Positions 6,201 to 57,426 of a stretch of 64,000 bases of DNA are shown here, piece by piece. Position numbers and translations under genes: made by a program. The stretch spans positions 34,468 through 98,467 of the forward strand of contig NIVC01003151.1 of the NCBI GenBank assembly GCA_002269645.1, given 5' to 3'. The first letter of the stretch is position 1, and each line of letters starts with the position of its first letter. A model generated the notes under the pieces. That model worked only from the letters and a program-made list of their open reading frames with translations, was not told where the DNA came from and made no database searches. Source of the stretch: Macrostomum lignano. Lineage: Eukaryota.

Positions 6201-6268
6201 ACTGGCTGTTCCTGAGGCGGCCGTTTCTCTGGCCTGGGGTGCCCGAGGAGCAGCGGTTTGTCTGGTAG
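3244..6268 (+). CDS. ALG10: Dol-P-Glc:Glc2Man9GlcNAc2-PP-Dol alpha-1,2-glucosyltransferase (ALG10/DIE2)
   Basis: Exons 3244-3964, 4958-5324, 5860-6268 with GT-AG and consistent phases (1, 2). Motifs YMDEIFH, FYTD, CRQTN, GDRSAHEA, HPYLLADNRH, EPRYF and C-terminal QRFVW*. The start could alternatively be the Met of MLLAELL. Confidence 0.93.
4010..4790 (+). repeat. 23-bp minisatellite in ALG10 intron 1
   Basis: Tandem GGAGTTGAGTGAGATTCTGTGT(C/A), degenerating towards the 3' end. Confidence 0.95.
5441..5696 (+). repeat. 16-bp minisatellite in ALG10 intron 2
   Basis: Tandem CTGAGGCA(C/G)TGGGGTG. Confidence 0.95.
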
Positions 6269-6415
6269 CCGGAATTGGGGGCCTGATTGCGATTTTAAAT
6301 TTTCTATTAGCGAGATGAGAAGTTTTCCTGGCCATATAACAGATTTGAAATTTTTTTGAATTAAATATTCATGTTAGAATGAGCTCCCTTAATCCCTGTC
6401 ATCAATAAACTCAAC

Positions 6416-6480
6416 TGAGTCATGGCATCTCAGCACTTCCCCATTGAGTCATGGCATCTCAGCACCTCCCCATTGAGCCT
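6416..6480 (+). repeat. 29-bp repeat, short array (same family as 48860-49042)
   Basis: GAGTCATGGCATCTCAGCAC(T/C)TCCCCATT about 2 copies, just after an AATAAA at about 6404. Confidence 0.75.
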
Positions 6481-7129
6481 CTGCATCACAGAAACTCTCT
6501 ATTGGGCCTTATGAAGTTCAGGCTTCAGACTTAAGCTCAACAAATGCAACCTTCAATGTAGTGCAGTGCGCCAAGTTCCTCGCCGGATAATACATTTTAA
6601 AACAAGATTTTACCATGAATTAATTTTGACCATTTTTTAAGATGTTTTGCGTTCTTTTATAGAAAAAATGTTACTAAAAATTTGGTCAGTTGGGTTCTGT
6701 CTGTGTTGTAGGTGATGTTCCAGTGGTCTGCTACTAAATTATAGTGAAATATTTAGTTATATCTTTGAGAAAATTCATCCCATCAGCTCCTTAGCTGTTG
6801 TGCCCGTGAAAATCGCATTCAGTCACTTGTTAATATCATTATTTTTTGTTTGAATCTAGGCATCTGTCTGTTAGTTTATTTATTGAAATATGCTGCTGGG
6901 CATTTTGCATTCTTTACTTCTCTATAACTTGTGCTCACCGACATTATGAATGTGCCTTTATCGGTGATGCGATTATAATGGCTGTCCTGGTGTTAGTGCT
7001 CCAGCAATGCTTAATTATTAATAAATGTCTGCATTAAATAAATGGTGTACCTGTTTTAGCCATAGTTTTAATCTGGTGTTCACCGCGACTCACATGTACT
7101 AATTTCAAGATCACTGTTATTTAGTAGAC

Positions 7130-7795
7130 ACCATTCACTATCTAATAAATTGGCATTCACTATCCAAGGAATCGCCATTCACTAAGGAATCGCCATTCAC
7201 TATCTAAGGAATCGCCATTCACTACCTATAAGGAATCGCCATTCACTAAGGAATCGCCATTCACTATCTATAAGGAATCGCCATTCACTAAGGAATCGCA
7301 ATTCACTATCTATAAGGAATCGCCATTCACTAAGGAATCGCCATTCACTATCTATAAGGAATCGCCATTCACTAAGGAATCGCAATTCACTATCTATAAG
7401 GAATCGCCATTCACTATCTAAGGAATCGCCATTCACTATCTATAAGGAATTGCCATTCACTATCTAAGGAATCGCCATTCACTATCTATAAGGAATCGCC
7501 ATTCACTATCTATAAGAAATCGCCATTCACTAAGGAATCGCCATTCACTATCTATAAGGAATCGCCATTCACTATCTAAGGAATCGCCATTCACTATCTA
7601 TAAGGAATTTCCATTCACTATCTATAAGGAATCGCCATTCACTATCTATAAGAAATCGCCATTCACTAAGGAATCGCCATTCACTATCTATAAGGAATCG
7701 CCATTCACTATCTAAGGAATCGCCATTCACTATCTATAAGGAATTTCCATTCACTATCTAAGGAATTGCCATTCACTATCTAAGGAATTGGCATT
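7130..7795 (+). repeat. 18-24-bp minisatellite upstream of DDX55 ATG
   Basis: Tandem AGGAATCGCCATTCACTA(TCTA)(TA). Shares an AATCGCC(A/C)TTCAC core with 27830-28190. Confidence 0.95.
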
Positions 7796-7834
7796 CGCTA
7801 TTAAAAGAAATCGCTATACCTCATTATCTTTTGC

Positions 7835-10800
7835 ATGCAGGAGCAGCAATCGCAGCAGCCCCTCCCTCAGCCAAGCGGCTGGCAGCTGGACAGAGTCGAG
7901 CTGTCCCCAGCTGCTCAATCCGCTATCGCGGCTCTTGGCTTCGCTGCACCAACCCCAGTCCAGCGAGCCTGCATCCCGCTGCTGCTCAGCAACAAGGATG
8001 TAGCGGCGGAGGCTGTGACGGGGTCGGGCAAAACCCTGGCTTACCTGTTGCCGGCTCTGGAGCTGCTGTCCCGCCGGCCGGAGCCTTGGGGCCGCGGAGA
8101 AACCGGCGCCGTGATTGTGGCGCCGACAGCTGAGCTGGCCAGGCAGGTGAGCGGAGTGCTGGCTTTCCTGATGCCGCACTATGAGCGGCATCGCCAGCCC
8201 GGCAGCTGGGGCCAGCTGCTGCTCACTAGGGGCTGCTCGCAGGCTGAGATTGATGCGGCTCTGGCTAAGGTGAGTACTATGAGGCTGGGATAATGCTAAA
8301 ACTCCCAATATGCCAAGATCTCTAGGCCTTGTGTCATGACTCACAAGACTCTAGTTCTATAATCTTAGTCAAATAATTAAATTCCACTATTCCCAAGATC
8401 ACCATTCCCAAGATCATCGGTCCCCAGATCCTCAATCCCAAGATCCCCATTCCCAAGATCCCCATTCCCAAGATCCCCATTTCCCAGATTCCCACTCCCC
8501 AGATCCCCACTCTCAAGATCCCCATTCCCAAGATCCATATTACCAAGATCCCTATTCCCAAAATCCTCATTCCCAAGATCCCATTCTCAAGATCCCTATT
8601 CTTAAGGTCCCTATTCTCAAGATCCCTATTCCCAAGATTCCAGTCCCAAGATGCCCTTTCCCAAGATCCAGCTATTCCCAAGATCCATATTCCCAAGATC
8701 CCTATTCATAAGATCCCATTCCCATCCATATTCCCAAGATGCCCTTTCCCAAGATCCAGCCATTCCCAAGATCCAGCCATTCCCAAGATCCATATTCCCA
8801 AGATCCCTATTCCCAAGATCCCTATTCCCAAGATCCCTATTCCCAAGATCCCATTCCCAAAATCCATATTCCCAAGATCCCATTCCCAAAATCCATATTC
8901 CCAAGATGCCCATTCCCAAGATCCAGCCATTCCCAAGATCCAGCCATTCCCAAGATCCCTATTCCCAAGATCCCTATTCCCAAGATCCCTATTCCCAAGA
9001 TGCCTATTCCCAAGATCCCTATTCCCAAGATCCCATTCCCAAAATCCATATTCCCAAGATGCCCATTCCCAAGATCCTCAAAGCCTTGGCCTCCCCCAAA
9101 CACGCAGGGCGCCACCCTAGTCGTAGCCACCCCGCGCCGTCTCAGCGACCTGTTGGAGTCGAGCTGCTCAACCGGCGAGCGGCTTTGCTCGGCTCTGCGC
9201 TCGGTGGAGCTGCTGGTGCTGGACGAAGCGGACCGGCTGCTGCAGCAGGGCTTCCGCCCGGCCCTGGACGCCCTGCTGTCCCGCCTGCCGAAGCAGCGCC
9301 GCACGGGGCTGTTCAGCGCTACGCAGACTCGCGAGCTGGAGCAGCTGGTGCGGGCCGGCCTGCGCAACCCGGTGTCGGTGCGGGTGACAGAGAAGCTGGC
9401 CAGGGTGCCGGCCGGCCTCACCAACCTCTACTGCGAGATTGCGGCCGATAAGAAACTGGACTTCCTGTGCACCTTTTTGATGGAGCATGCCGCTGAGCAG
9501 AAGGTTAATTAGAGCTCCGTGTCACTGGCGATGATGTCTGGGATTTAAATTAGTCTTTCGAAGATATTGGGATATGGGGATTTTAGTTGGGATATGAGGA
9601 TTCCAGTTGGGATATGGGGATTTCAGTTAGATATTGGGGATTTCAGTTGGATATTGGGGATTTCAGTTGGGATATGGGGATTTCAGTTGGATATTGGGGA
9701 TTTCAGTTGGATATTGGGGATTTCAGTTGGGATATGGGGATTTCAGTTGGATATTGGGGATTTCAGTTGGATATTGGGGATTTCAGTTGGGATATGGGGA
9801 TTTCAGTTGGATATTGGGGATTTCAGTTGGGATATGGGGATTTTAGTTGGGATATGAGGATTTCAGTTGGGATATGAGGATTACAGTTGGGATATGAGGA
9901 TTTCAGTTGGGATTTGGGGTTTTCAGTTAAGTTGTGGGGATTTCAGTTAAGTTATGGTGATTTCAGTTGGAATATGGGGATTTCAGTTGGGATATGGGGA
10001 TTTCAGTTGGGATATGGGGATTTTAGTCGGGATATGAGGATTTCAGTTGGGATATGAGGATTTCAGTTGGGATATGAGGATTTCAGTTGGGATATGAGGA
10101 TTTCAGTTGGGATTTGGGGTTTTCAGTTAAGTTATGGTGATTTCAGTTGGAATATGGGGATTTAAGTTGGGATATGGGGATTTCAGTTGGGATATGGGGA
10201 TTTCAGTTGGGATATGGGGATTTTAGTCGGGATATGAGGATTTCAGTTGGGATATGAGGATTTCAGTTGGGATATGAGGATTTCAGTTGGGATATGAGGA
10301 TTTCAGTTGGGATATGAGGATTTCGGTTATGATATGAGGAATTCAGTTGGGATATGAGGATTTCAGTTGGGATATGAGGATTTCAGTTGGGATTTGGGGT
10401 TTTCAGTTAAGTTGTGGGGATTTCAGTTAAGTTATGGGGATTTTAGGTGAGTTTTGGGATTTGAGTAGATTGTTGGGATTTGGGAAAATTTTTGGGATTT
10501 GAGTAGATTTTTGGGATTAGAGTAACATCGCTGCCAATAATCTCCCGCAGGTGCTGGTATTCGTGGCCACCTGTGCCGTAGCGGACTACCTGGCCAAGGC
10601 GCTGCGCCAGCTCCGCCCCGACCTGCCGCCGCTGTCCGCCATCCACGGCCGGATGCGCAAGAAGCGCCGCTCCGTGTTCGCCGCCTTCGCCAGCTGCCGC
10701 TCCGGCGCCCTCGTCTGCACCGACGTCCTGGCTCGCGGCGTCGACTTGCCCGACGTTGCCTGGGTGCTGCAGCTGGACCCGCCCACCAGCGCCGAGCATT

Positions 10801-15900: not shown

Positions 15901-16560
15901 CTCATTTTAGCGCCGCAGGCACTCATTTTAGCGCCGCAGGAACTCATTTTGGCGCCGCAGGAACTCATTTTAGCGCCACAGGCACTCATTTTGGCGCCGC
16001 AGGCACTCATTTTGGCGCCGCAGGCACTCATTTTGGCGCCGCAGGCACTCATTTTGGTATAGCGGATTGTGGCATAGCGGCATAATTAAGTGAAAAATTC
16101 CCACCTGCTTGGTCAGAGCGGCCACCAGGCCACTGAAATAAGCGCTAGCGGAGATCCTGGACACATCGAAGTACTCCACTGCGGCTGTGTCGCCATAGTT
16201 TGGCACCCGGATGCTCACGTTCGGCGCATTGTGGCTGATGTTGGTGACGTTGTCAAAATGCAATCGGAAGTTGTCAACAAAACAGTCGATAGTGAAATAA
16301 GTGAGCAGCTCGAGGTTCAGCCAGATGGGAAAATAATCCTTGGTAGTCTTGGAGCACCAGTAGTGTGGCACCCAGGGCTTGCCGTCGAGTCTGGCCTCAA
16401 CCTGGCTGCCGCCATCGCCTGGGATGAGAATCACTGGAGTCTTGGCAGCGGCAGCAACAATGGGCAGTGCTGGTTGCGCAATAGCCAGTGCCAATAGCAG
16501 CAATGCTGCAGGCAGGGAGCAGAGGCTTGAGCCAGATTTGTGCCAAGTGTGCACAAGCAT
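12941..16560 (-). CDS. PLA2G15: Lysosomal phospholipase A2 / LCAT-family lipase (two apparent 1-nt deletions)
   Basis: Exons 16560-16105, 15391-15060, 14274-13883, 13123-12941. Signal-peptide-like N-terminus, PVILIPGDGGSQVEA, nucleophile AHSYG, GDGTV (Asp), AEH (His). The frame breaks at about 15125 and about 14125; restoring 1 nt at each gives about 454 aa. Confidence 0.88.
13180..13845 (+). repeat. 32-bp minisatellite in PLA2G15 intron 3
   Basis: Tandem GGGTAGATAGGGTGGAGGCTACTCAAGCATCT. Confidence 0.95.
14380..14940 (+). repeat. 21-bp minisatellite in PLA2G15 intron 2
   Basis: Tandem ACAGACAGGTAC(C/A/T)TCATAG(C/A)(C/T). Confidence 0.95.
15456..15765 (+). mobile_element. tRNA-derived SINE with CORE-like central domain (PLA2G15 intron 1, antisense to host)
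   Basis: A-box TAGTCTAGTGG (15464-15474) and B-box GGTTCGATTCC (15508-15518). These are followed by TGTGTCCTTAAGCAAGACACTTAA...CAGCTGTAAAATGGG (MIR/CORE-like), a GC hairpin and a TTATT tail. No TSD found. Confidence 0.75.
15900..16037 (+). repeat. 21-bp minisatellite in PLA2G15 intron 1
   Basis: GGCACTCATTTT(G/A)GCGCCGCA about 7 copies. Confidence 0.95.
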
Positions 16561-19500
16561 GTCAGCTGTCTGAAGAACCAGTTTTGTAAACAATGGTGAT
16601 TGTGTGACAGTAAGATCTTGTTTGTATTAGAGACAGGGGGCTGAGAGCAACCTGGCACACTTTAAGCAACATTGCCTAACTACCAACTCCACTGAGCAAA
16701 CAATCTTTCAATTTAATTAAACTTATATTATTTTAATATATACTTATTATTATAAGTATATATCTGCTTTTCAAATTAAATTTCCTATATAAATTTTGCA
16801 CTGTCTTTCTGTAATTGATTTTTTGAGAACCATCTAGTCAATTTTTATTTCAAATTAGCTTTAAAAAATTTAATTCCTTGGCAGTCATGCATAACTTTTT
16901 TCATTGAAAAATTTGAATTCGAAATGGTTCAAATATAAAAAATGACATTTTAATGCTTTCAATTGGCAATCTATTTGAATTTTGCATTTGAATGCCCACA
17001 ATGGGGAGCTCAATGTGCTGGTAAAAACTAAATGCATTTCATAGAAAAATGAAAACATAACTAACTTTATACAATAGTCAAGGTGGTATATGCATGCTAG
17101 AATGCATTTTAGGCAAAAGACCCCATTTACATCAAATGTATGGCAATTTTTAAGCTGCCTTTGATTCACTATACCAGGAGCCAAAATATATAGTTCTAAG
17201 CCCTAATAGGTTTTTTTAGATTCCAACTTTTTACATTGGTATAAAATCATGTTTTTAATTAGATTGGACTTCATTTCATATACTTTCTCATACTTTTATA
17301 CTTTCTCATTTTCTCATAGTCATATGTACATCTATAGCAATATCTTATTTTCCTATAGCCTATCTATATTGAAATCTATAGCTAATAAACTTAAACTATC
17401 TATAACTATTTGTAAACTTTCTTGTATAGTTGCAATATGCCACCTCTCACTATTAGCTATTATAGGCTATAATAGTTATAAATAGTGTTTTGCCAAATGC
17501 ATTTGCGGCACTTTACATATCAATTTGATTGCCTTTTGACTGTTTTCTCTCTTCTCTCTTCTCTTCTTTGCCCTTTTTATCTTCACTTTCTACTCTCCCC
17601 TCTTTTCTTTACCATCTTTTTTTCTCTATCTCTTTTCTTTCCCCTTTTCTTCTCATATCTCTTCTTAGAATATTTAAGTAACAAAAGTAACAACTACTGT
17701 TACTTTATAATTAAAGTAATAAAATCTCTAATTCTTACCAAAATCTATGAGAGCAGTGGCTTGCTTATCAGTTGGTTTCTAAGAAGTCTCCTTTGCAATC
17801 TAGCCTTGTTTGATAGTGGCAAATGCTAGGTGGTTTCCCCATTGGCTTCAATTCTCTTAACTTAAGCCTTTAATATCCTGACCCCAGGGACTTAAGACCT
17901 TCCCCTATATTGAAAGTGAAAACATTCATCTTAACATTAATCCCTATCACCTAGCCATATCTTGCATTTGGCATTGAAACTATTTATTGCTTAAGTCCCC
18001 AAATCTATATAAGGATTTAAGTCTAAGAGCTAGATGTTAGATAGGATCCTAATCCAATCTAATAACCTTAATCCCATCTGACCTATATTAAGAGCTCCCC
18101 TTTGAAATTGAAAACACCTTGGGTATGGCATTGAAAATCTCTATTGCTTAAGTCCTAAATTCCAAGGACTTTGAAACTGGCAATATTTATTCACTTTTAT
18201 TATCCTACCCCTATCAGTCAAACCAATAGCTCAATGGCCTTTTAATTCTCAGTTGGGTAGCATAACTAGATATAAGAATTAGATATAAAAAGATAAACTG
18301 GATATAACTGAAAATTAAGTAATAGGCCTAAATGATAATTTAATCATTATCCAAAATTGATATATATATATACAAGTGCTAATTTATAAAAGAGGTACTG
18401 GAATCATTAGTTAAACTAATGCTTGAAATCTTATGTAAATAACTTTTGCCAATTGGTTTTTTTTACAAAAGTACTGTTAAGCCAAGCCAATAATATGAAT
18501 GTAACCCTAGTGTCTTGTGTATATAAAAATAAGTAGCATAACCGCATCGTAAGCCCTTGAGCTATTCAAGAACATAGGGGGGGGGGGGATTGAAAAGATA
18601 AAAAGGATTACGATTTTTAATGACAGTAAAGTTGAATTTTAAAGTACATTTTTGATCTTATATTGTGATTCAGGATTTCACGTTCACGCCTACTTGAAAT
18701 TAACAATAAATTACAAGGAACTTAAGTAATTCAAATTTTAATTGTATCCATCGTGACCAATCGTCGACATTTGATTTGACGCAAAATATAAATTCATGTC
18801 GCATTATCGCAATCATAATTGTGAATTTTATTTTACTTTTTAACACGTAATGTCGTTTCACTGATTGCATGAAACAAAATGCATACAGAAAGAACTGTGC
18901 TTAAATTTTTCTGTAACGATATTAAAAGTCCTGATCACTCAGTGGTTTGTCCGAGTCCTGCCCTGAAGCGGCGCGACATTAGAGATTAATGCGCGACCAT
19001 AGAATATAGATTATCTGATATCTTGTACAATTTTTAACTGAACAAAAGCTAACATATAACACTAACTACCAACGAAAGTTAGCTCAAAATGGAACAGTTT
19101 TCCTTTTCTTGAAATCTCATCTCATCAAATCTTAATCTTCTGAATTCTTAAACTAGGCTGCTATAGTGCTATTTTTTATTTTTACTATTTTTTGGCTTGT
19201 GTTATCGTTTTTTGTGACCGTATAACTAGCAAAATGTTTATTCAATAGTAGTCTAGGGCCTAGTCAATGTAACAGTGTCAGTATAAGTTATAAGTAGCCC
19301 TATAAAAGCGAAGTGAAACTTATGTCTATCCTGTAGTTTCGTAGGCCTACATTAAATTATTTTTGTTGAAAATAAAAACTTTAAGTAACTTTAAGCTTAG
19401 GCCCTAATAAGTGACAGAATAGATAGGGTCTAATAAGGAACAAATATAACATGTTCAATGAAAATAATTTTATTAATTTTATGTCCAAAACTATAACATT

Positions 19501-20690
19501 GCCTAGTCAAACTTATTTTTATAGGCCTAGTCACTATTAGGCCTGAGTAGCAAAAAAGCTACCATATTTTTATGGTAACTTTGTAAAGGCTAAGTTTAAG
19601 TTAAGGCCTAGAACAATCACAGCCATAGAAGAAAAGGGGAGAGAGGCCAGACAGACAATAAACCAAAAGCAAGCTTAGCAAAGAAGCTCAGACATTGGGA
19701 AGATGGAGGAACCAAAAAAAGGGGGCAAGGGAGAAAATGCAGACAGCCAAAAGGACAAATGGGCCAAGAAAAAGGAGAGGGAAAGAGGCAAGGGAGAGGA
19801 GAAGGAAAGAGTAAGGGAGAGGGAAAGAAAGAGGGAGAGCTGCGACCAGTGGCAATCAACAGCTCAAAGGGCACAGGGAACTGCTGACAAAAGTGGGCAC
19901 CTAATACTATTGACTAAACTAGTGCTCACTTCATTTATTTTCTAAATTTAATAGCCTCTTAGTCTTATTGTTTAGGCACTCATTATTTATATGAAAGTAT
20001 GACTAGATATTGCTAGCCATAATCTAGAAGGTGGCCTTTATGCCAGAATTTTCTAGAGTATTTTTGCTCTCACTGACAATCTTGGCATATAGAATAGCCT
20101 ATGCCTATTCAGGTTCAACATGAAGTGTACACAGTTGGCATACAAAAAATAGCCAAGTTCAAGAAAAAGTGGCATATAAACTATTTTAGTCTTAGTGTAA
20201 AAAATTTTTAATTATATGTCGGCATACAATTGAAAAAACATGAATTTTCATTCTGGTATATGCCTGCCATGATCCAGACTATAGATTGCTAAGTATTGCA
20301 TAGTATTGTATAAATATTTTTGGAAGTTATTTGCAGTGTTGAGCACTAGTCTATTAATAAGCATTAAGATTTTTCATTAACATTAATATGTAGCAATAGT
20401 TGATGAAGATAAAGAGCAAAGGTGGTGGCTCTGTGTTTGCTGAATAAACAGAATCACTTAAAGAGTTGAAGTACTTAGGTTACATTTATTTATAGTATTG
20501 AACTGAGTATAACCAGAAATTTCTAGAAGTTTCGTTAGTTACAACAAAATTAAATATTTTAAATGCTATTACGTAATACTACCGTACAAATGCATTAATA
20601 AATATGACCACAATAAATTTTATACTTAATATTAAGCAGTAAAACTAACATTTAAATAAACTAAAGGAAATTTCTGGAATCTGACAAGAA

Positions 20691-21536
20691 GTTATAATAG
20701 CATTCTTTTGGTTTATGTTCACCCCAAACAGTGACAATCACCTTAAACAGTGACAATCACTACAAAAAACAGTTTTAAGACATAAAATACATAGTTTCCA
20801 ATGAAACAAAATCAAATGTTTGAAAACCTTCTTTGTTTATTTCAAAAGATAGTAAGATTGTTGTAGCACCTTATATTTCACCCTTCAGTTTACAATCATC
20901 CAAACATATGTTGCCCATTGAAATGATCGTGAACTAAAGCTAGCAGTAAGAAAACCTGTCAAACTAATTTCAACTGTCAAGTTGCAAGTTTAAGCTACGG
21001 TAGCCTATATATTTCACCTTTGGTTTATGATCACCCAAATGTATGTTGCCTATTAAAATGATCATGAACCAAAGCTGGCTGTAAAAAAGTGTACTGATGG
21101 TTGACATGCTTTCCTATAGCCAGCTTTGGTTCACGATCATTTCAATGGAGTGCATGTATAGAAGTGATCGTAAACTGAAAGTGGGGAGGGTGCGGTGCTG
21201 AAGATTAATTATACTAAGCTAGGGTTGACATGCTTTCCTACAGCCAGCTTTGGATGATCGTAAACCAAAGGTGATATATATAAGCTACTAGTGAACCAAT
21301 GTACAATCTTTTCAATCTCAAATAAACAAAGTTAGTTGATCAGCTCCAACTTTTGCTCTCTTTTCATTTGAAACTACTATTGGTTTTTATGTCTTAGTTT
21401 TGAACACACCATTTTTGCACTGCAATAAGCAAAATATAAGGTGATCATAAATCAAAACTAGAAAAATAGAAGGTGATCCTAAACCAAAACTGGCAAAATA
21501 GATGGTGATTGTAAACCAAAGGATTGCTGTTATAAC
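20691..21536. mobile_element. Foldback/MITE-like palindromic element
   Basis: Imperfect terminal inverted repeats GTTATAATAGCATTCTTTTGGTTTA / TAAACCAAAGGATTGCTGTTATAAC. Internal arms are also inverted (TAAGACATAAAA...GTTTCCAATG vs CATTTGAAAC...TTTTATGTCTTA), with many (G)ATC(A/G)T(A/G)AACCAAA motifs. Confidence 0.6.
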
Positions 21537-24500
21537 ATTACAAATGTATTCAAATTTACTTAAATGCCTAATTAATCTTTTGGTTTATGACAATTATCAT
21601 GCAGATGTAACAACTTCTTACTAATAAACTTTAATAATGAATTAAAATTGTAAACTTTATTGCTTATGCATGAGCATCAATTGCTTTGATTAACTTCTTT
21701 GCCAATCTTTCGTAACTTTCTGCTGCGCTTACTAATGCTACTGAAACAACCTTCCTATTCATATCTTATTATTAACTAATTAGCTTTTAAGTTTCAAATA
21801 AATAAGTTACTTTTGTTTACTGTATGCTTACTTTTAGTAGTATTATGCTTATAAGTTTCAACTATTATTATTATTTGTTATTTTTAGCTTGTAAATTGCA
21901 TGGATAAACTCTATGTTCTACTAAAGATGGAAAAGTGGAAGCAGTATATTATGAAGTCTGTTTTGAAAAAAAGTGCAATATTTCTATATTTTTTGTGGTA
22001 ACTTTAATGGATTAATGCTTATTAATGATTATCAATTAATTTTCAGTAAACTTAATAAAATTAAGAGTTAAAAAGTTACACATTAAAGTTACAATTAAGA
22101 TTTTTTCATTCTAATGCTAACACTTTTGCCATTAACGGAAGTTAAGATTTTCATTAATGGTGCCCAACACTGGTTATTTGCATGATATGGCCTAATTTGT
22201 GGCATGCATGAGGGTTTTTGACCCTAGTGTTATACCATAGTTCAGAAGGTAACATGTACGTCAGGATATCCTGGCATACAACAAGGGTCTTATCATTTTT
22301 TAGTGTATATCAGGTTATATCCCAGCATACATGACATAGCAGATATATTGTGTCAAATAACAATTTTTTTGTATTGGCATACAAACCTAACATACAAACA
22401 AGGTCTCATCATTTTTCCAGCATTAAACCCAGTATATACTAATAGATGATCTGAACTATGGGCACCTACTGTGTATTACTGCATGCAATAAGACTTTGTA
22501 TATAGCTAATAAAATTTACAAAGTTTTTTACAAACTTATAAACTTAATAAACTTAATTAAACTTAATTTACAAAATCAATAAAAATTTTTGGCATGTAGC
22601 TGTGTGCAAAATGGATTCAGAAATAAAACATAGGTTTGGATTTGGCTGGACTGTAGAAATTTGGAATTGGTAATGTCTTAATTTAATTTTTTTAATAAGT
22701 AATTACACTTACAAAATTTTTTTAAATACAAAAATAATTTTTTATTTCTTTCACAGCAAAATTAAAGACTAAAAAGTAATCCAATCCATGGAAAATAATG
22801 AATTTAAATTGTTTAAATAGGCTTTGCTGCTTTTACTTAATAAGCAAAGTGCTAAAAATACAAGCAAATTTTCAATTTTAACTTCTGCTGGTCTCTGATA
22901 TGGCACGCAGTGCAGATAAGGCCCTTGGTGTATGGTGTGTAATGCGCATGAGATTTCCAAATAATCTTGGTGTATGGCATTCAAGGTTAAAAAGTTTCAT
23001 GGTATGCATGGAATATCTTTGAGACTTTAGGGTACAGTGTAAAGAACAAGTGCTGCTCTAATTGTATAGAGTTTTATTGGATCCATGTGAATTGCCCATA
23101 GACGAATTGCCCACCAAGATTTGCCCATAGGAGATTTGCCCACAGTGCATTTTCCCATGAGCAAATTGCCCATGGGGCTCTTGGGTCCACTGGCAGTTAC
23201 ACATGGGCTTTGTTGCACAATGCAACTAAGTAAAATAATAAAAACCTAGTCAGTGGTAGCCCACTACTACAACTAGACCCTCTATCAAAAGGGAAAAAAC
23301 AATGTTATAAACTTCAAATTTATGCTAGGTCAACTGGCCAAAGCCCATGTGTAAATAGATTATAAGTATTACAAAATGTTTCAAATACAATCAATATTAA
23401 TACTTATAATATAGTTTTTAACCAATTTCAATGTATAATATATCATTTTTTAGTTTTTTACACTATATCTATTGATGAGAATAAATCTATTACAAATAGA
23501 ATAGCTTTAATAAAACATTTGCTACAATACTTTTAAAAGTTAGTCTTAGACCTGTAGTCAGGATCATGTTATACATATGCTAGAATTTCCCCAAAAATAT
23601 TTTCAATTGTATGCCAAGTATATCAGCCAAAATGCACTAGAGTGCTGGGTTTTACCCATAGTAAGTCTGGAATCTCCTAACTTGAGCATGGGCCTAAATA
23701 TAAACATTTATATAAATTGAAAAAAAATACAAACATTTTTTATAAAGCTGTTTTTTTCTTATAGAATTACAACATACTTGCAAAATAATTGTTAAATTAT
23801 ATATTTACAGCTTTATACATATTTTTTTAATAAAATTTTTAATTTTTCAAAACTACTAAAACTTTCATGACAAATGGGATTTATTATGCTTGTGTAAACA
23901 ACTATATAGTGGCATGGGGCAGCCTTTTCTAGGTTCAGAACAAGAATGTATGCACCACATAATGCATACTGTATACCAAAAATTAATTATGCAAGTTTCC
24001 ATGATAATTGGTTGAGGTATTTTTTCCTAGATATATATGCTTTCACATTAGATAAAAAAATAGATCTAAACATCCTCTATTCCTAACAAAAGTTGTTATT
24101 CTAATCCTACCAGGTTCTAAATATTTTGATTTTGTCTGACTTTCTTTATTCATGATATTGATAAAATCATTTTAACATTAGAAAAAAATATAGGTGGCTA
24201 TATTATTAACAAACCAATACAGTAAAAAACAAGAAATCCCCAGTTCTAACATAGAACAATAGAGTAGGGACTAAGCATAGAACCAGAGAATTAAAATTTA
24301 AACTTTATTGAAGACCTACATATATATCCTCGACCTTATCTGTAAAAGTTACAGTTAAAAGGTAAAAATGCTTTTTTGATTTAGCCAATTTTTTTTATCT
24401 TTAATTTTTCACTATAGGCCATACTTGTTATTTATTGTCGTGTCATGATTTATGTGTCATGAGTATTGAGGATCGGAGATAGGGGGATTACCCTCCCCAA

Positions 24501-25564: not shown

Positions 25565-26490
25565 TTTGTGCCCTGAAGGTTGTAGGATCCGATCTGTGCC
25601 CTGAAGGTTGTAGGATCCAATCTGTGCCCTGAAGGCTATCATAGGATCCGATCTGCGCCTTGAAGGCTATTATATGATTTGATCTATGCCATGAAGGTTA
25701 TATGATTTCATCTGTGCCCTGAAGGTTATAGGAAGATTTCATCTGTGCCCTGAAGTTTATAGGAAGATTTGATCTGTGCCTGAAGTTTATAGGAAGATTT
25801 GATCTGTGCCCTGAAGGTTATAGGAAGATTTGATCTGTGCCCTGAAGGTTATACGAAGATTTGATCTGTGCCCTGAAGTTTATAGGAAGATTTGATCTGT
25901 GCCTGAAGTTTATAGGAAGATTTCATCTGTGCCCTGAAGGTTATAGGAAGATTTGATCTGTGCCCTGAAGGTTATAGGAAGATTTGATCTGTGCCCTGAA
26001 GGTTATAGGATTTCATCTGTGCCCTGAAGATTATAGGAAGATTTGATCTGTGCCCTGAAGGTTATAGGAAGATTTGATCTGTGCCTTGAAGGTTATAGGA
26101 AGATTTGATCTGTGCCCTGAAGGTTATAGGAAGATTTGATCTGTGCCCTGAAGGTTATAGGAAGATTTGATCTGTGCCCTGAAGGTTATAGGAAGATTTG
26201 ATCTGTGCCCTGAAGGTTATAGGAAGATTTGATCTGTGCCCTGAAGGTTATAGGAAGATTTGATCTGTGCCCTGAAGGTTATAGGAAGATTTGATCTGTG
26301 CCCTGAAGGTTATAGGAAGATTTGATCTGTGCCCTGAAGGTTATAGGAAGATTTGATCTGTGCCCTGAAGGTTATAGGAAGATTTGATCTGTGCCCTGAA
26401 GGTTATAGGAAGATTTGATCTGTGCCCTGAAGGTTATAGGAAGATTTGATCTGTGCCTTGAAGGTTATAGGAAGATTTGATCTGTGCCCT
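25565..26490 (+). repeat. 31-bp minisatellite upstream of PNKP ATG
   Basis: Tandem GATTTGATCTGTGCCCTGAAGGTTATAGGAA, highly homogeneous. Confidence 0.95.
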
Positions 26491-26605: not shown

Positions 26606-29600
26606 ATGCGCGCCAGTTTGGTTTGCCCTCGCACGGGCAGAACAGTTTGCACCATAGACAGCGGCGGCAGAGTTGTCATCGGCCGTCAGCCACAGTTCGA
26701 CATTCGAGACGCGGCCTGTTCTCGTCAGCAAGCCAGATTAGATTTGCAACAAACAGACAGCGGTAGCAGCGGTGACAGTGACTCATTGACAGTGACTTGT
26801 GTTGGAGCTGGTAGGTTGTATGTCAACTCTAACAGTGATGACAAAGGTGGTGATCAGCGTCAACTATTGACTATGGGCGAGTCGGCGAGATTAGCCAATG
26901 GCGACGCTTTGATACTTGGCAACGACTGTCTGCTGAAGGTGTTATTGGCACCTGAGGACTCGGAGCCGGTGGTAAAGAAGCGGAGACTCGAGCAATTGAA
27001 TGCGGGCGAGGGGGCCCAGCAAGATAGCGATGAAAATCCTAGTCAAGTTGATCTTCAATTGAACTTAATGCGCCAAGCAGCCGCTCGGTTCTCCAGCCAA
27101 TCAGATTGCGCAGCCAGCGCCAGCCAATTGGAAGCCTCCAACTCGGCCAGCCAATCAAATCCATCTGACTCTCCCAGCCAATTAAAGCCGACTCCAACTG
27201 GTTGGCGCGATTTCGGCGCAGTGCTTGTCTACACGACGCCCGGCTGTTTGCCCAGCCGCAAAATCGCCGGATTCGATATGGACGGCACGCTGATTACCAC
27301 GCAGTCTGGTCGAGTTTTTGCCAAAGATCTGGCGGATTGGAAAGTGATTTATCCCCAGGTGCCTGGCCGATTGAAATCTCTGGTCGCTGAGGGCTACAAA
27401 GTGGCACTGTTCTCTAATCAGAAAGGTGTCGAGGTTGGCAAAGTGAGAGTGGAGGATTTGAAAGTCAAAGTGAGTATATGTCCTACTATGCCAGTTTATT
27501 TCTTTGTTTTGAATAGCCAATGATGACTCAATTGCTACTCTTGATGTGTCTTATGATGAGAAGGTTTACCACCTTGTTTCTGTCTGAGGCTATGGAACTT
27601 TTCTTTTCTGTTTTCCTTATTAGATAGATAGGCCGGTATGATGACCCAATTGCTACTCTTGACCTGTTGGTATGATGAGCTGCATCTACCACCATTCACT
27701 GTGTCTGAGGCCCGGATTTATTGTACGTTCGTGCATCAGAATTTTACAAATTATTTAGTATTATAATACAAATTATTTTCTAACTTGCTTGCTAACACAC
27801 CAGCGTAATTCTTTTTTCGTCTCTTAAGTATCGCCCTTCACCGCCTTCCGAGAATCACCCTTCACCGCCTTCCGAGATCACCCTTCACCGCCTTTCAAGA
27901 ATCGCCTTCCGTGAATCGCCCTTCACCGCCTTTTGAAAATCGCCCTTCACCACCTTTTGACAAGCGCCCTTCACCGCCTTCTGAAAATCGCCCTTCACCG
28001 CCTTCCGAAAATCGCCCTTCACTGCCTTCCGTGAATCGCCCTTTACCGCCTTCCGAAAATCGCCCTTTACCGCCTTCCGAAAATCGCTCTTCACCGCCTT
28101 CCGAAAATCGCTCTTCACCGCCTTCCGAAAATCGCCCTTCACCGCCTTCTGAAAATCGCCCTTCACCACCTTTCGAGAATCGCCGTTCACTGTCTGCGTT
28201 TCTCATCTGTCTCAAAAAAATTATATTTATATGGCCCATATGATGACCTAATTGCTACTCTTGACCTGTCGGTATGATGAGCTGCATCTACCACCAGTCA
28301 CAATGTCTGAGGCCAGAATTTTGGGGCAAGATTTATTATAAATTCGATGAACTGTTTATTATGACTTTTAACTGTCCTTGCACTAATGCAAAGTTAATTG
28401 TTTTATATGTTTGTCTTATAAGGCCGATATGATGACCTAATTGCTACTCTTGACCTGTTGGTATGACGAGATGCATCTACCACCATTTTAATTGTCTAAG
28501 GCCTGGATTTATAGTGATGTTTGAACTGCAGCTATTATTGAAAAGTATTTTCATATCAGTTTTGAAATATAATCACGAGTCTTATTGAACTAAATCGCTT
28601 GATAACGAAACAGATTGAGAGAGTTTCCGCTCGCCTGGGCGCACCAATGCAAGTTTTTCTTAGCGTGCGCGGTCAACGATATCGCAAACCCTGCACTGGC
28701 ATGTGGCACCTACTGGAGCGAGATGAATTCAATGCGGGCCTCCGACCGGATCCGGCTGAGTCGTTTTACGTTGGAGACGCAGCTGGCAGACCAGCTGAGA
28801 CTGGTAAAGGTGAGATTTACTAGTACTGCATTTTTCTTTTTCTGTTACTTCTTTTTTCTCAGATTTCCCCGTATACCGTAGAACTTCCCCGTATGGGATT
28901 TCCCCGTATGTGAATTCCCCGTATGGGATTTCCCCGTATGTGAATTCCCCGTATGGGATTTTCCCGTATGGGATTTCCCCGTATGGGATTTCCCCGTATG
29001 TGAATTCCCCGTATGGGATTTCCCCGTATGGGATTTCCCCGTATGGGATTTCCCCGTATGTGAATTCCCCGTATGGGATTTCCCCGTATGGGATTTCCCC
29101 GTATGGGATTTCCCCGTATGGGATTTCCCCGTATGGGATTTCCCTGTATGGGATTTCCCTGTATGGGATTTCCCCGTATAGGATTTCCTCGTATGGGATT
29201 TCCCCGTGTAAAATTTCCCCTGGGATTTAAAAGTTGGTACACTTTAGTCATTAGACGTTTCTTAAAGTTTAATTAAAACGACGGCCAATATGATGACCTA
29301 ATTGCTACTCTTGACCGGCTGGTATGATGACACATCTACCACTATTTACTGTCTGAGGCCTGTTCTTACTATTTTTTAAATATATCTTTGTTCGGAGATG
29401 TGAGTAACACGTTAATTAAGGCCCATATGATGACCTAATTGCTACTCTTGACCATTTGGTATGATGATCTGCGTCTACCACCATTCACAGTGTCTGAGGC
29501 CTCAATTAAGTGTAGACCATTTCAGGATTCAGTCCGGATGTTTTAGGGGATTTTTCCTCTGGAATTGCTTCTAGTGAGAGTTTCCTAGTTTGTAAATACC

Positions 29601-31294
29601 TTAGAAATTTAGGTTTTTGGGGTTTCTTTGTCTTGTTTTTTCTCGCTTGGATTTCCCTGGCTTGGATTTCTTTTTTTAGATTTCCCTCCATACATGCGCA
29701 ACCTCCAAAATTTCGGTCGGCCGTGCGACTTAGTTTCAACAAAAATGCGACGTAGTTTTTGGCGAAAAATGCGACTTACATGTAAAAAACCCTAAAGCAA
29801 AATTAACGCAACTTTGGGTAAACGGCAGGAGTATTTATAACTGTCTTATTAAGCCAAAATGCCTCGTCAGCTACTTAGTTTACTACTTGGTTGTTTTTTC
29901 GGTGGGCATTTTTGCGACTTCCTTGGTTGGCCGCCAAATCGGTCGGCCGGATCGGCCGACTGTTGCGCATGTATGTTTCCCTCTTTGGATTCCAATGTCC
30001 TAGATTTCCCTCTCTAAATTTCCGTCTTGGATTTCCCTGTATTTGATTCCCCTGTCTTGGATTCCCCTGTCTTGGATTTCCCTGTACAGATGTGCATGAG
30101 AAAAATCCAATACAAACTGCCAGGTCGCACCGGCCGCAAAGCCGACTTCTCCTGCTCGGATCGGCTATTCGCTCTCAACTGCCGTATGAGCGCCTTCCAC
30201 ACGCCCGAAGAGTTTTTTCTGGACCATCGCCCCGTGCCGCTGGCCCAGTGCCGCATGCCGGAGTTCGATCCCACAGTTCTGCTTAATGCAAAAAATGCCC
30301 ACGCAGATTGCTCGCCTACAGACGAGTTGCGTCAGTTTTTGCTTGACGATTCTTCTAGTAGCAAGTCGGCTGCCCTGCTTGTGCTGCTCGTGGGCTACCC
30401 GGCCAGCGGCAAGTCCACTCTGTGCGCTCAAATCAGCCGCTTGCTGGCCGGCCAGGGCGCTGCGGGTCCAGCTGTCTGCGTTGTGAATCGGGACCGGCTG
30501 GGCACCTGGCAGAAGTGCGTGCAGTCTGCCGAAACTGCGCTCAAGTCTGCTTCTGGCAGAGCCATTGTGCTGGTGAGAGTTCATGGGGCTTGATAATTGG
30601 GGGTCAGTAGCCCAACAACAGGATCTGGGAGGCTGGCCCAGCAACTGGGGATCTGGGAGGCTGGCCCAGCAACTGAGGATCTGGGAGGCTGGCCCAGCAA
30701 CTGAGGATCTGGGAGGCTGGCGCAGCAACTGAGGATCTGGGAGGCTGGCCCAGCAACTGAGGATCTGGGAGGCTGGTTCAGCAACTGAGGATCTGGGAGG
30801 CTGGTCCAGCAACTGAGGATCTGGGAGGCTGGCCCAGCAACTGAGGATCTGGGAGGCTGGCCCAGCAACTGAGGATCTGGGAGGCTGGCCCAGCAACTGA
30901 GGATCTGGGAGTGCAGTCCCACGCCAACCCCAACCCGCAGGTGGACAACACCAGCGTGGACCAGGAGAGCCGGCAGCGCTATATCGAGTGCGCCCGCCGT
31001 TGCAAAGCCGGGGCCGCCTGCCTGGTGATGCAGTGCAGCCTGGCCCAGTGCCTGCACAACGAGCGGTACCGCCGCATTGTGGAAGAGGAGGCCGTGGACA
31101 ATCCAGCGGACGGGCCGCCCAGCAAGAAGCGACGCGAGCCGGTGAGCGAGATGGTGTTCAACCAGATGCGGGCCAAGTTCGTTGAGCCCAGCCTGTCCGA
31201 AGGATTTGATCGCATTTTGAAGGTGCCGTTTGTGCCGAGCTTTCAAGTGGATGAGCACAGGAGACTGTACTGTCAGTATCTGATGGAGAAATAG
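26606..31294 (+). CDS. PNKP: Bifunctional polynucleotide kinase 3'-phosphatase
   Basis: Exons 26606-27469, 28614-28809, 30124-30572, 30941-31294 (phases 0, 1, 0). FHA (IGR...CSR), HAD motif FDMDGTLI, SNQKG, RKPCTGMW, YVGDAAGRP, DFSCSDRLFA, Walker A GYPASGKST, VDNT. Confidence 0.94.
27513..27593 (+). ncRNA. SNORD76: Box C/D snoRNA, SNORD76(U76)-like, copy 1
   Basis: Terminal stem ATAGCC/GGCTAT, C box ATGATGA (27520), D' guide AATTGCTACTC-TTGA, C' ATGATGA, TACCACC element, D box CTGA (27584). Confidence 0.85.
27631..27712 (+). ncRNA. SNORD76: Box C/D snoRNA, SNORD76-like, copy 2
   Basis: GGCC/GGCC stem, C box at 27638, same guide, C', CTACCACCA, D box CTGA at 27705. Confidence 0.87.
27830..28190 (+). 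repeat. 24-bp minisatellite in PNKP intron 1, between snoRNA pairs
   Basis: Tandem AATCGCCCTTCACCGCCTTCCGAA. Confidence 0.93.
28232..28315 (+). ncRNA. SNORD76: Box C/D snoRNA, SNORD76-like, copy 3
   Basis: TGGCC/GGCCA stem, C box at 28240, guide TAATTGCTACTC-TTGA, C', CTACCACCA, D box CTGA at 28307. Confidence 0.87.
28421..28504 (+). ncRNA. SNORD76: Box C/D snoRNA, SNORD76-like, copy 4 (degenerate boxes)
   Basis: AGGCC/GGCCT stem, C box at 28429 and guide intact, but D box reads CTAA and C' reads ATGACGA. Confidence 0.7.
28860..29225 (+). repeat. 15-bp minisatellite in PNKP intron 2
   Basis: Tandem GGGATTTCCCCGTAT / GTGAATTCCCCGTAT. Confidence 0.95.
29283..29360 (+). ncRNA. SNORD76: Box C/D snoRNA, SNORD76-like, copy 5
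   Basis: GGCC/GGCC stem, C box at 29290, guide, C', CTACCAC, D box CTGA at 29353. Confidence 0.86.
29419..29502 (+). ncRNA. SNORD76: Box C/D snoRNA, SNORD76-like, copy 6
   Basis: AGGCC/GGCCT stem, C box at 29427, guide, C', CTACCACCA, D box CTGA at 29494. Confidence 0.87.
29689..29975. mobile_element. MITE with 14-bp TIRs and 8-bp TSD (hAT- or P-type)
   Basis: CATACATGCGCAAC ... GTTGCGCATGTATG, with TTTCCCTC on both sides (29681-29688, 29976-29983). Confidence 0.8.
30620..30910 (-). repeat. 28-bp dispersed minisatellite family, PNKP intron 3
   Basis: Reverse complement of CCCAGATCCTCAGTTGCTGGGCCAGCCT, about 10 copies. Confidence 0.95.
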
Positions 31295-31669
31295 CATACG
31301 CTTACCGTTGTTGCTATGGTTACCGATTGCAACGCCAATATTGCATCATTTTGCTTACAAAAGTACTGGTATTTGCAATCGAAATCGTAAAATGTATTTT
31401 TTTGATGAGTTTGCATCGATAGCTCTTTCAGTTTTGTAGGTTCACTATTATCATTTTTTATTCCTGTATGCATGCTAGCTATTGTCTCATAATTACCCAT
31501 TCGAAACATACATTTAATTTGCTTTATCATTTCATGACTCATGGCTTCATATTTTGGTGCCGGTTTATGACTTTATTGACGTTGGAGAGAGAAATTTGTG
31601 CATAAAAATTGACTTTTATATTCAAATAGTTCATTTTGACTGCTAGGCTGCTTTCATTTATTATCTACG

Positions 31670-32180
31670 CAATTCCCATGATCCCTGAGCCACCTGAGCA
31701 ATTCCCCATGATTCCTGAGCCACCTGAGCAATTCCCCATGATTCCTGAGCCACCTGAGCAATTCCCCATGATTCCTGAGCCACCTGAGCAACTCCCCATG
31801 ATCCCTGAGCCACCTGAGCAATTCCCCATGATCCCTGAGCCACCTGAGCAATTCCCCATGATTCCTGAGCCGCCTGAGCAATTCCCATGATCCCTGAGCC
31901 ACCTGAGCAATTCACCATGATCCCTGAGCCACCTGAGCAATTCCCCATGATCCCTGAGCCACCTGAGCAATTCACCATGATCCCTGAGCCACCTGAGCAA
32001 TTCACCATGATCCAGGAGCCACCTGAGCAATTCCCCATGATCCCTGAGCCACCTGAGCAATTCACCATGATCCCTGAGCCACCTGAGCAATTCACCATGA
32101 TCCCTGAGCCACCTGAGCAATTCCCCATGATGCCTGAGCCACCTGAGCAATTCCCCATGATCCCTGACCCACCTGAGAAA
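31670..32180 (+). repeat. 30-bp minisatellite upstream of ATP5S ATG
   Basis: Tandem ATGAT(C/T)CCTGAGCCACCTGAGCAATTC(C/A)CC. Confidence 0.95.
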
Positions 32181-32250
32181 TTCATCTTCACTTGTCGTTC
32201 ATTCCTCAAGTTTTATTACTTAGCAACGCATTAATAATTTCATTTCCTGC

Positions 32251-50962: not shown

Positions 50963-51460
50963 TCTCTACAGGAATCAAAGCTTGCTGAGACTAACATCTA
51001 CCTGTTAATGTGCTGCATGTAAAGGTATACAGCACTTCTCCGAGAATCTAGAAGCAATTAAAACTCACAGATCAGTGCGCAAAAGTTAGCAGGTAAAAAT
51101 CAATATTTCAGACATAGCATCATTGCAGAATACTGTACGTGAGCATGCTAGGAACTAAGGGCTGGATCTAGTAGTCCTACTAAAAGCAGGAAGATGTGCT
51201 AATTTGAAGTTATCTTAAATATTTCAATTAAAAATGTTAAACAATATGGAATACTATGAAACGAGCAGTGAAAAGTCCTGTATCCAAGGTAAGCAAACGG
51301 TTGCTAAGCGACGAGTTTCTTTTTCACTTTTTTTCAAAATCAATTTAGCGAAATCTTCAAATGAAGCATCTTTATAGTAAGCATTGAGAAAACCAAGAGG
51401 GTAAACGGCGAGTAAACTATGACAGCTTTAAACTCGTCAGCTAATTCGTTGAAAAAATTT

Positions 51461-57426
<5,966 letters not shown>

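Follow-up and report, generated by a model that had tools for sequence, protein, structure and literature searches.

Six candidate U24/U76-family box C/D snoRNAs in two introns of a PNKP gene of the flatworm Macrostomum lignano

What are six look-alike units of about 80 nt doing in the introns of a DNA repair gene? The question is raised by a stretch of the genome of the flatworm Macrostomum lignano (assembly GCA_002269645.1, contig NIVC01003151.1, positions 34,468 to 98,467), 64,000 nt in length and referred to below as the window, in which the units are found within the gene encoding PNKP. An earlier reading of the letters alone, without database searches (the sequence-only reading), had taken the units for small nucleolar RNAs (snoRNAs) of the box C/D class resembling human SNORD76. 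In the analysis described here, we conclude that they are very probably genuine U24/U76-family snoRNAs of the box C/D class, predicted to methylate the adenosine equivalent to A2363 of human 28S ribosomal RNA (rRNA) with the help of extra pairing by an ACCACC element. The RNA itself is ordinary and its family deeply conserved; the layout is uncommon for animal C/D snoRNAs but has precedents.

Six units with a conserved core

All six units lie on the + strand between positions 27000 and 30200 of the window and each displays the C/D layout with a closing stem. The stem-to-stem coordinates below were obtained by a regular-expression parse of the window sequence.

27515..27591, + strand: unit 1; stem ATAGCC/GGCTAT (6 bp), C box ATGATGA, AATTGCTACTC, D' box TTGA, C' box ATGATGA, TACCAC, D box CTGA
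27631..27712, + strand: unit 2; all boxes present, stem GGCC/GGCC, 39 nt 3' of unit 1
28233..28314, + strand: unit 3; all boxes present, stem TGGCC/GGCCA
28422..28503, + strand: unit 4; C' box ATGACGA, D box CTAA, ending 110 nt short of the 3' splice site
29283..29360, + strand: unit 5; shorter spacers, TACCACT in place of TACCACC, remaining boxes intact
29420..29501, + strand: unit 6; all boxes present, stem AGGCC/GGCCT, 59 nt past unit 5, with 622 nt left to the 3' splice site

The order of elements is the same throughout: a terminal stem of 4–6 bp, the C box, three variable nucleotides, AATTGCTACTC, TTGA, a loop of 8–9 nt, the C' box, 6–8 variable nucleotides, TACCAC, 10–12 variable nucleotides, the D box and the 3' half of the stem. 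An invariant 11-nt guide adjoins the D' box TTGA in all six units. The C box is ATGATGA in six of six, the D box is CTGA in five of six (unit 4 has CTAA) and the C' box is ATGATGA everywhere except in unit 4 (ATGACGA), whilst in units 2–6 the D'–C' loop is closed by an ACC...GGT stem, with the four central loop bases varying. The units possess several features of the box C/D class, namely C and D boxes, a terminal stem and internal D'/C' boxes with a guide. The layout described in the sequence-only reading is present in every unit, with exceptions that had gone unnoticed: the altered C' and D boxes of unit 4 and the TACCACT of unit 5.

Several searches single out the same six units. The 15-mer AATTGCTACTCTTGA occurs exactly six times in the window with no mismatch; with as many as two mismatches allowed, chance predicts 0.17 matches, and none of 100 shuffles gave six. 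A covariance model built from the units returned exactly these six matches in the 64-kb window and no seventh, and a generic scan requiring C and D boxes together with a stem of 5 bp or more returned these units only, with 0 matches in 10 shuffles. Further snoRNAs in the window were revealed neither by the generic scan nor by comparing the full 64 kb with Rfam in E-value mode. The six units are thus where the sequence-only reading had placed them, and its grouping of them into three pairs is equally sound: the spacers within pairs measure 39, 107 and 59 nt, those between pairs 520 and 779 nt, the longer of which includes PNKP exon 2, lying together with a 15-nt minisatellite between pairs 2 and 3. 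Duplication of whole pairs (odd unit plus even unit) was considered and rejected, as the identities do not group units 1, 3 and 5 against units 2, 4 and 6.

Comparison of the units with one another reveals a strongly uneven distribution of change. The cores are 72–91% identical, whereas the 60-nt flanks are 42–59% identical, which we take to represent no real similarity; with flanks unrelated and cores alike, the duplications must be old. Unit 1 is the most divergent copy (72–75% identity to the others) and scores 78.7 bits with the covariance model. Among the six units only 4 of 47 columns vary in the stem, boxes, guide and accessory element, as opposed to 28 of 35 in the spacers (Fisher p = 3e-11, or p = 2.5e-7 when unit 1 is left out), so that the contrast between conserved boxes and guide and diverging spacers, to which the sequence-only reading had pointed, holds quantitatively. 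Moreover, two of the four variable functional columns represent both sides of a single base pair: the terminal stem covaries, being AGCC/GGCT in unit 1 (extended to ATAGCC/GGCTAT) and GGCC/GGCC in the others, and unit 3 has an additional stem pair, T-A, for which units 4 and 6 have A-T.

Three other contigs in the M. lignano assembly (L001, L002 and L003) encode PNKP, and in each of the four loci the covariance model identifies exactly six units in equal arrangement, with the guide and UUGA invariant in 24 of 24 copies. L002 is ~99% identical to the window and L003 yields identical model scores for all six units; both are too close to the window to count as independent data. L001, by contrast, is a diverged paralogous locus (homeolog) with roughly 92–95% identity in non-coding DNA. 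That six units are found in each paralogous locus implies that the cluster is older than the divergence of these loci. Between the window and L001, substitutions number 7 in 497 positions in the units, 39 in 1860 in the exons and 25 in 740 in well-aligned unique intron. An initial figure of 9.5% for intron divergence was discarded as too high, because it included a part of intron 2 that cannot be aligned and that contains a transposon-like insertion and repeat-length differences.

These comparisons bear on the possibility that most copies are recent tandem duplicates decaying into pseudogenes, with a functional snoRNA coming from no more than one or two units. We regard this as unlikely, although there are observations in its favour. 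The D box of unit 4 is CTAA and its C' box mutated in the window, L002 and L003, whilst the D box is canonical CTGA in L001 (12008-12095); on sequence grounds unit 4 is probably weakened or inactive in this locus (CTAA, ATGACGA), and one lineage seems to be losing it. The accessory element is altered in unit 5, the extra constraint on the units in the homeolog comparison is weak, and in an environmental relative (metagenome locus L015) one of two tandem copies has a damaged C box. Set against this, the flanks have diverged beyond detection with the boxes and guide remaining invariant, as would be expected of old duplications whose elements have been maintained, and all six units have been kept in both homeologs. 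Of the six unit changes that could be located in pairwise homeolog alignments, five are spacer changes, the remaining one being the G/A change in the unit-4 D box.

Family and predicted target

Human SNORD76 resides in intron 3 of GAS5, as the sequence-only reading had stated, and published primers for it read TGACAGTTTATTTGCTACTCTTGAG and, when the second is reverse-complemented, GAGGATCTTAACCACCATTATCTTA (PMC5390076). Comparison with these primers shows that the units and human SNORD76 have the same order of boxes and share TTGCTACTCTTGA, comprising the D' guide and D' box, at 13 of 13 nt. The D' guide UUGCUACUC is followed by UUGA, exactly as in the human forward primer, and the D' box variant TTGA is common to both. 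Also shared is ACCACCATT, which lies 3' of the C' box with no Cm2351 guide after it; in other words, the ACCACC element is kept without a functional D guide. The genomic setting differs, human SNORD76 being a single copy in its own intron of the non-coding GAS5 host, whereas the units here are six in number, several per intron, in a protein-coding DNA repair gene.

In Rfam's E-value mode, the best match of every unit is RF00069 (SNORD24, U24 or yeast snR24), over the full model, and this family targets the same 28S segment. The scores are 34.4 bits for unit 1, 29.8 bits for unit 5 and 24.4, 23.9, 23.8 and 23.7 bits for the others, all below the RF00069 gathering score of 41 bits. What separates the units from SNORD24 is the absence of its D guide for Cm2351 (CACCAAGATC): the U24 D-box guide ACCACCAAGAUC, complementary to GAUCUUGGUGGU at the Cm2351 site, is not found in the units, in which CAAGAUC is missing before the D box. 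Only (CU)ACCACC persists from the U24 D-guide region, followed by 10–12 nt that differ among units.

Outside M. lignano, the sequence that best fits the unit model (50.9 bits, E = 4.5e-10) is an RNA encoded on the metagenome contig Ga0181612_172491 (L013), positions 4261-10020 of which are evidently a vertebrate GAS5-like snoRNA host locus. Here SNORD74, SNORD75, an RNA at the U76 position, two snR60/Z15-type RNAs, SNORD79, SNORD47 and SNORD81 follow one another in series, and it is the U76-position RNA, sharing CTACCACCAT with the units, that the model detects. A wider scan of metagenome contigs for ATGATGA-N(2-12)-TTGCTACTCTTGA returned 117 stretches, over half of them snoRNA-like by eye. 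Most of the snoRNA-like matches belong to the two-guide U24 type, combining ATATTTGCTACTCTTGA with CACCAAGATC-CTGA, and some are of U76 type, with CTACCACC followed by unrelated sequence.

The SNORD76-type D' guide and box ATATTTGCTACTCTTGA are thus widespread in two-guide U24-type RNAs of environmental eukaryotes (L004-L120), and their distribution suggests that the two-guide form with a U76-type D' guide is ancestral, U76-type RNAs having been derived from it by loss of the D guide. Because the D' guide also occurs in two-guide RNAs, "U24/U76 family" is a safer label for the units than strict SNORD76 orthology. Synteny does not point to orthology either, the host being PNKP rather than a GAS5-like gene with multiple snoRNAs, and going by their sequences the units could also have arisen separately from a U24-like ancestor. 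The SNORD76-like identity proposed in the sequence-only reading therefore stands as far as the 13/13 match of guide and D' box and the shared ACCACCATT are concerned, but not as strict orthology. When the unit model was run on metagenome loci, the first 100, all on short contigs, included a single one with a second copy, L015, where U24/U76-like copies at 2095-2170 and 2762-2848 lie ~670 nt apart with similar flanks, the C box of the first being damaged (GATGATGC).

With regard to the target, human 28S rRNA is modified at Cm2351 (SNORD24), Am2363 (SNORD76), Gm2364 (guide unknown) and Cm2365 (SNORD24) (PMC11550049). The target position is given by the five-nucleotide rule, and yeast U24 is able to modify two adjacent nucleotides from one D' guide (PMC5389607). 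Counting back from UUGA, the bases of the sequence shared with SNORD76 are C, U, C, A and U. We take UUGCUACU to be complementary to the 28S segment AGUAGCAA that holds human Am2363, in which case the fifth base, U, presumably lies opposite A2363, the A of AGUA-G-C. The spacing of Cm2351 and Cm2365, 14 nt, is in keeping with this assignment. Human A2363 is, we assume, A2350 in the older numbering and its yeast 25S counterpart A1449, and on that footing the SNORD76 site named in the sequence-only reading (A2350) is Am2363.

A conventional mode of action can be envisaged on this basis. In the folded RNA the terminal stem would join the C box (AUGAUGA) and the D box (CUGA), and the usual small nucleolar ribonucleoprotein (snoRNP) components Snu13, Nop56, Nop58 and fibrillarin would be expected to bind. 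The sequence UUGCUACU, directly 5' of the D' box UUGA, would pair with the conserved 28S segment AGUAGCAA, so placing the equivalent of human A2363 (yeast 25S A1449) in the methyltransferase site by the fifth-nucleotide rule. The neighbouring G may be a second site, given that in yeast U24 a single D' guide serves two adjacent nucleotides.

A number of observations weigh against this assignment. At Rfam gathering thresholds there is no match in the window and hence none for any unit. The M. lignano 28S segment GGUGGUAGUAGCAA is presumed from yeast–human conservation. All six units have AAUUGC (for example at window positions 27530-27535) where human SNORD76 and most environmental relatives have AUUUGC; with canonical 28S this would create an A:A mismatch after 8 bp, cutting the perfect pairing from 11 bp to 8 bp and leaving a short guide duplex. 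In five units the gap between the GGCC stem and the C box is 3 nt, which is asymmetric. To these must be added the condition of unit 4, described above, and the homeolog comparison, which supports constraint on the units weakly (1.4% divergence versus 3.4% for intron).

The first of these points can be answered by means of a control. The U76-position RNA of the GAS5-like locus L013 scores 40.1 bits against SNORD24, just under the cut-off of 41, and matches no other Rfam family, from which it would appear that SNORD76-type RNAs escape every Rfam model at the curated threshold; the missing gathering match is therefore no evidence against the presence of SNORD76-type RNAs. The Rfam comparison suggested with the sequence-only reading thus had a divided outcome, with nothing at gathering level and sub-threshold SNORD24 matches for all six units (23.7–34.4 bits).

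As for the short duplex, if M. lignano 28S is canonical then a guide duplex of only 8 bp makes accessory pairing all the more important. Extra base-pairing has been found to boost methylation by as much as five-fold and is a typical feature of short-guide snoRNAs (van Nues et al., PMC3116282). In the units, (CU)ACCACC would pair with GGUGGU(AG), the rRNA bases immediately 5' of the guide duplex, which would lengthen the 8-bp duplex to ~14 contiguous paired rRNA bases. We view (CU)ACCACC as an accessory element rather than a methylation guide because 10–12 variable nucleotides separate it from the D box.

Host gene, intron layout and release

The reading frames that flank the units assemble to a 620 amino acid protein with FHA_2, PNK3P and AAA_33 domains, identifying it as PNKP. 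The best database match of the assembled protein is M. lignano PAA61689.1 (97% identity, gapless across all exon junctions), and no PNKP proteins of 45% to 97% identity were among the database matches returned. The gene is laid out as follows.

26606..27469, + strand: PNKP coding exon 1; encodes the FHA domain and the first part of the phosphatase domain with the DMDGT motif
27470..28613, + strand: intron with units 1-4; 24-nt minisatellite (27830-28190) between pairs 1 and 2
28614..28809, + strand: PNKP coding exon 2, from reading frames and the match to PAA61689.1
28810..30123, + strand: intron with units 5-6; 15-nt minisatellite (28885-29207), insertion resembling a miniature inverted-repeat transposable element (MITE; 29689-29975) and other short repeats
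30124..30572, + strand: PNKP exon 3
30573..30940, + strand: third PNKP intron, filled by a 28-nt minisatellite
30941..31294, + strand: PNKP exon 4, including the stop codon

Both the choice of PNKP as host and the placing of four units in intron 1 and two in intron 2, each made in the sequence-only reading, are borne out by the domains and by the agreement of the spliced model with PAA61689.1. The intron numbers refer to coding exons, for the deposited PAA61689.1 is labelled partial and upstream untranslated exons may therefore exist. The description of the host as atypical is a weaker point, since many animal snoRNA host genes are unrelated to translation.

Precedents for several snoRNAs in one intron come from different settings. 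In the part of the literature summarised in PMC3089462 (citing Liang 2002 and Huang 2005), rice intronic snoRNA clusters and Drosophila intronic H/ACA clusters are described with several snoRNAs, often isoforms, per host intron and with short spacers, as in M. lignano. The same summary, so far as it extends, gives Drosophila C/D snoRNAs as one per intron and one per intron as the pattern reported for animal C/D snoRNAs in general. The Drosophila clusters are thus of H/ACA type and rice is a plant, whereas the M. lignano cluster is a homogeneous animal C/D set distributed across two introns of a coding gene. [quoted passage not shown]

How might such clusters be resolved? The RNAs would be made from the PNKP pre-mRNA, all units sharing its sense strand, and exonuclease trimming of the debranched intron would be expected to halt at the outermost snoRNPs. 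With several units per intron, release of each would then need endonuclease cuts in the short spacers or alternative splicing, failing which snoRNA-capped RNAs would accumulate. In plants and yeast, polycistronic snoRNA clusters are cut by endonucleases into single snoRNAs. The "special release route" invoked in the sequence-only reading is, in our view, a reasonable extrapolation from these processing rules. The presence of many copies in each of three or four paralogous loci may serve to lift output from a modestly expressed host.

The layout also invites the suggestion that the main products are sno-lncRNAs rather than six free snoRNAs. In mammals a two-snoRNA intron yields a long RNA with snoRNA ends and is a prerequisite for its formation (PMC5054931), and here one intron has four units and the other two. 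The PNKP introns would on this account be incompletely resolved, leaving stable RNAs capped by snoRNPs at both ends, a state of affairs that we hold to be improbable. It might include an RNA of ~1 kb reaching from unit 1 or 2 to unit 3 or 4, with the 15-copy 24-nt minisatellite acting as a repeated binding platform, for which the prospects are similarly slim. Against long products being the principal ones stand the resolution of plant and yeast polycistronic clusters to single snoRNAs and the strict retention of guide and accessory element in inner and outer units alike, which argues that each unit is a guide; we therefore give the suggestion little credence, noting that it is compatible with the units being guide snoRNAs of the U24/U76 family. 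Were it correct, the snoRNP-capped intron RNAs would be the equivalent in a flatworm of the Prader-Willi sno-lncRNAs and might feed back on the splicing of PNKP.

Very unlikely, in our estimation, is that the units are independent genes with promoters of their own, simply located within introns in the manner of many snoRNA genes of C. elegans. It is true that the 5' flanks are A/T-rich, that some 3' flanks contain T runs and that the positions of the units (unit 1 starts 45 nt past the 5' splice site, and the last units of the two introns end 110 and 622 nt from the 3' splice sites) do not follow the vertebrate rule, by which intronic C/D snoRNAs sit roughly 70–80 nt from the 3' splice site. 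However, no 8-mer (with up to one mismatch) is shared by at least five of the six flanks within 100 nt upstream or 60 nt downstream, and no conserved promoter or terminator motif was seen there. Taken together with the location of all units on the PNKP sense strand and the 39–107-nt spacing within pairs, which leaves scant room for promoters, this makes intronic release likelier than independent transcription. The notion that the units have no RNA function, being either a repeat that arose by chance or a piece of a transposable element or minisatellite, can be dismissed for practical purposes, despite a locus rich in minisatellites and containing one MITE, given that the units are not arranged as a head-to-tail tandem, have unrelated flanks, lack poly(A) tails, terminal inverted repeats (TIRs) and target duplications, vary in step with snoRNA functional elements and match a conserved eukaryotic snoRNA family.

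If the units are indeed snoRNAs of the U24/U76 family, they are of interest on more than one count. Flatworm guide snoRNAs are barely annotated: a homology survey in Schistosoma reported no unambiguous homologue of known snoRNAs except U3 (PMC2770079), and our literature search returned no paper on Macrostomum snoRNAs. The units provide a clear and alignable homologue of a guide family found in humans and yeast, and from them a conserved site of 28S methylation can be predicted for a model animal that regenerates and is genetically tractable. Multi-copy C/D introns, two in succession and kept in all paralogous loci, also depart from the one-per-intron rule, and this clustered layout therefore amounts to a simple natural experiment on how intronic snoRNAs are separated in animals, or left unseparated.

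Repeats and other features of the window

Minisatellites crowd the PNKP locus, occurring upstream of the gene, in all three introns and just past the stop codon. Their array lengths vary among the paralogous PNKP loci. The five arrays are listed here with their periods.

26009-26490: minisatellite, period 31 nt
27830-28190: minisatellite, period 24 nt
28885-29207: minisatellite, period 15 nt
30620-30911: minisatellite, period 28 nt
31669-32200: minisatellite, period 30 nt

The unit of the 15-nt array includes GGGATTTCCC; Rfam DsrA and miRNA matches were set aside, being located in this array. Also rejected as spurious was a match to isrG at 51453-51686 on the - strand (30 bits, cut-off 100), which falls in a C-terminal coding exon, rich in alanine codons, of a putatively class-III aminotransferase-like protein that ends in ...LKFKPPMCF....

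The MITE-like insertion at 29689-29975 in PNKP intron 2 is 287 bp in length and hAT-like, with perfect 14-bp TIRs (CATACATGCGCAAC) and an 8-bp target duplication (TTTCCCTC). It is missing from the equivalent site in the homeolog L001, which has a 92.8% identical copy of the element at L001:5559-5833. Upstream of PNKP, at window positions 16000-24000, an A/T-rich block (30–38% G+C) lies between regions of 45–55% G+C.

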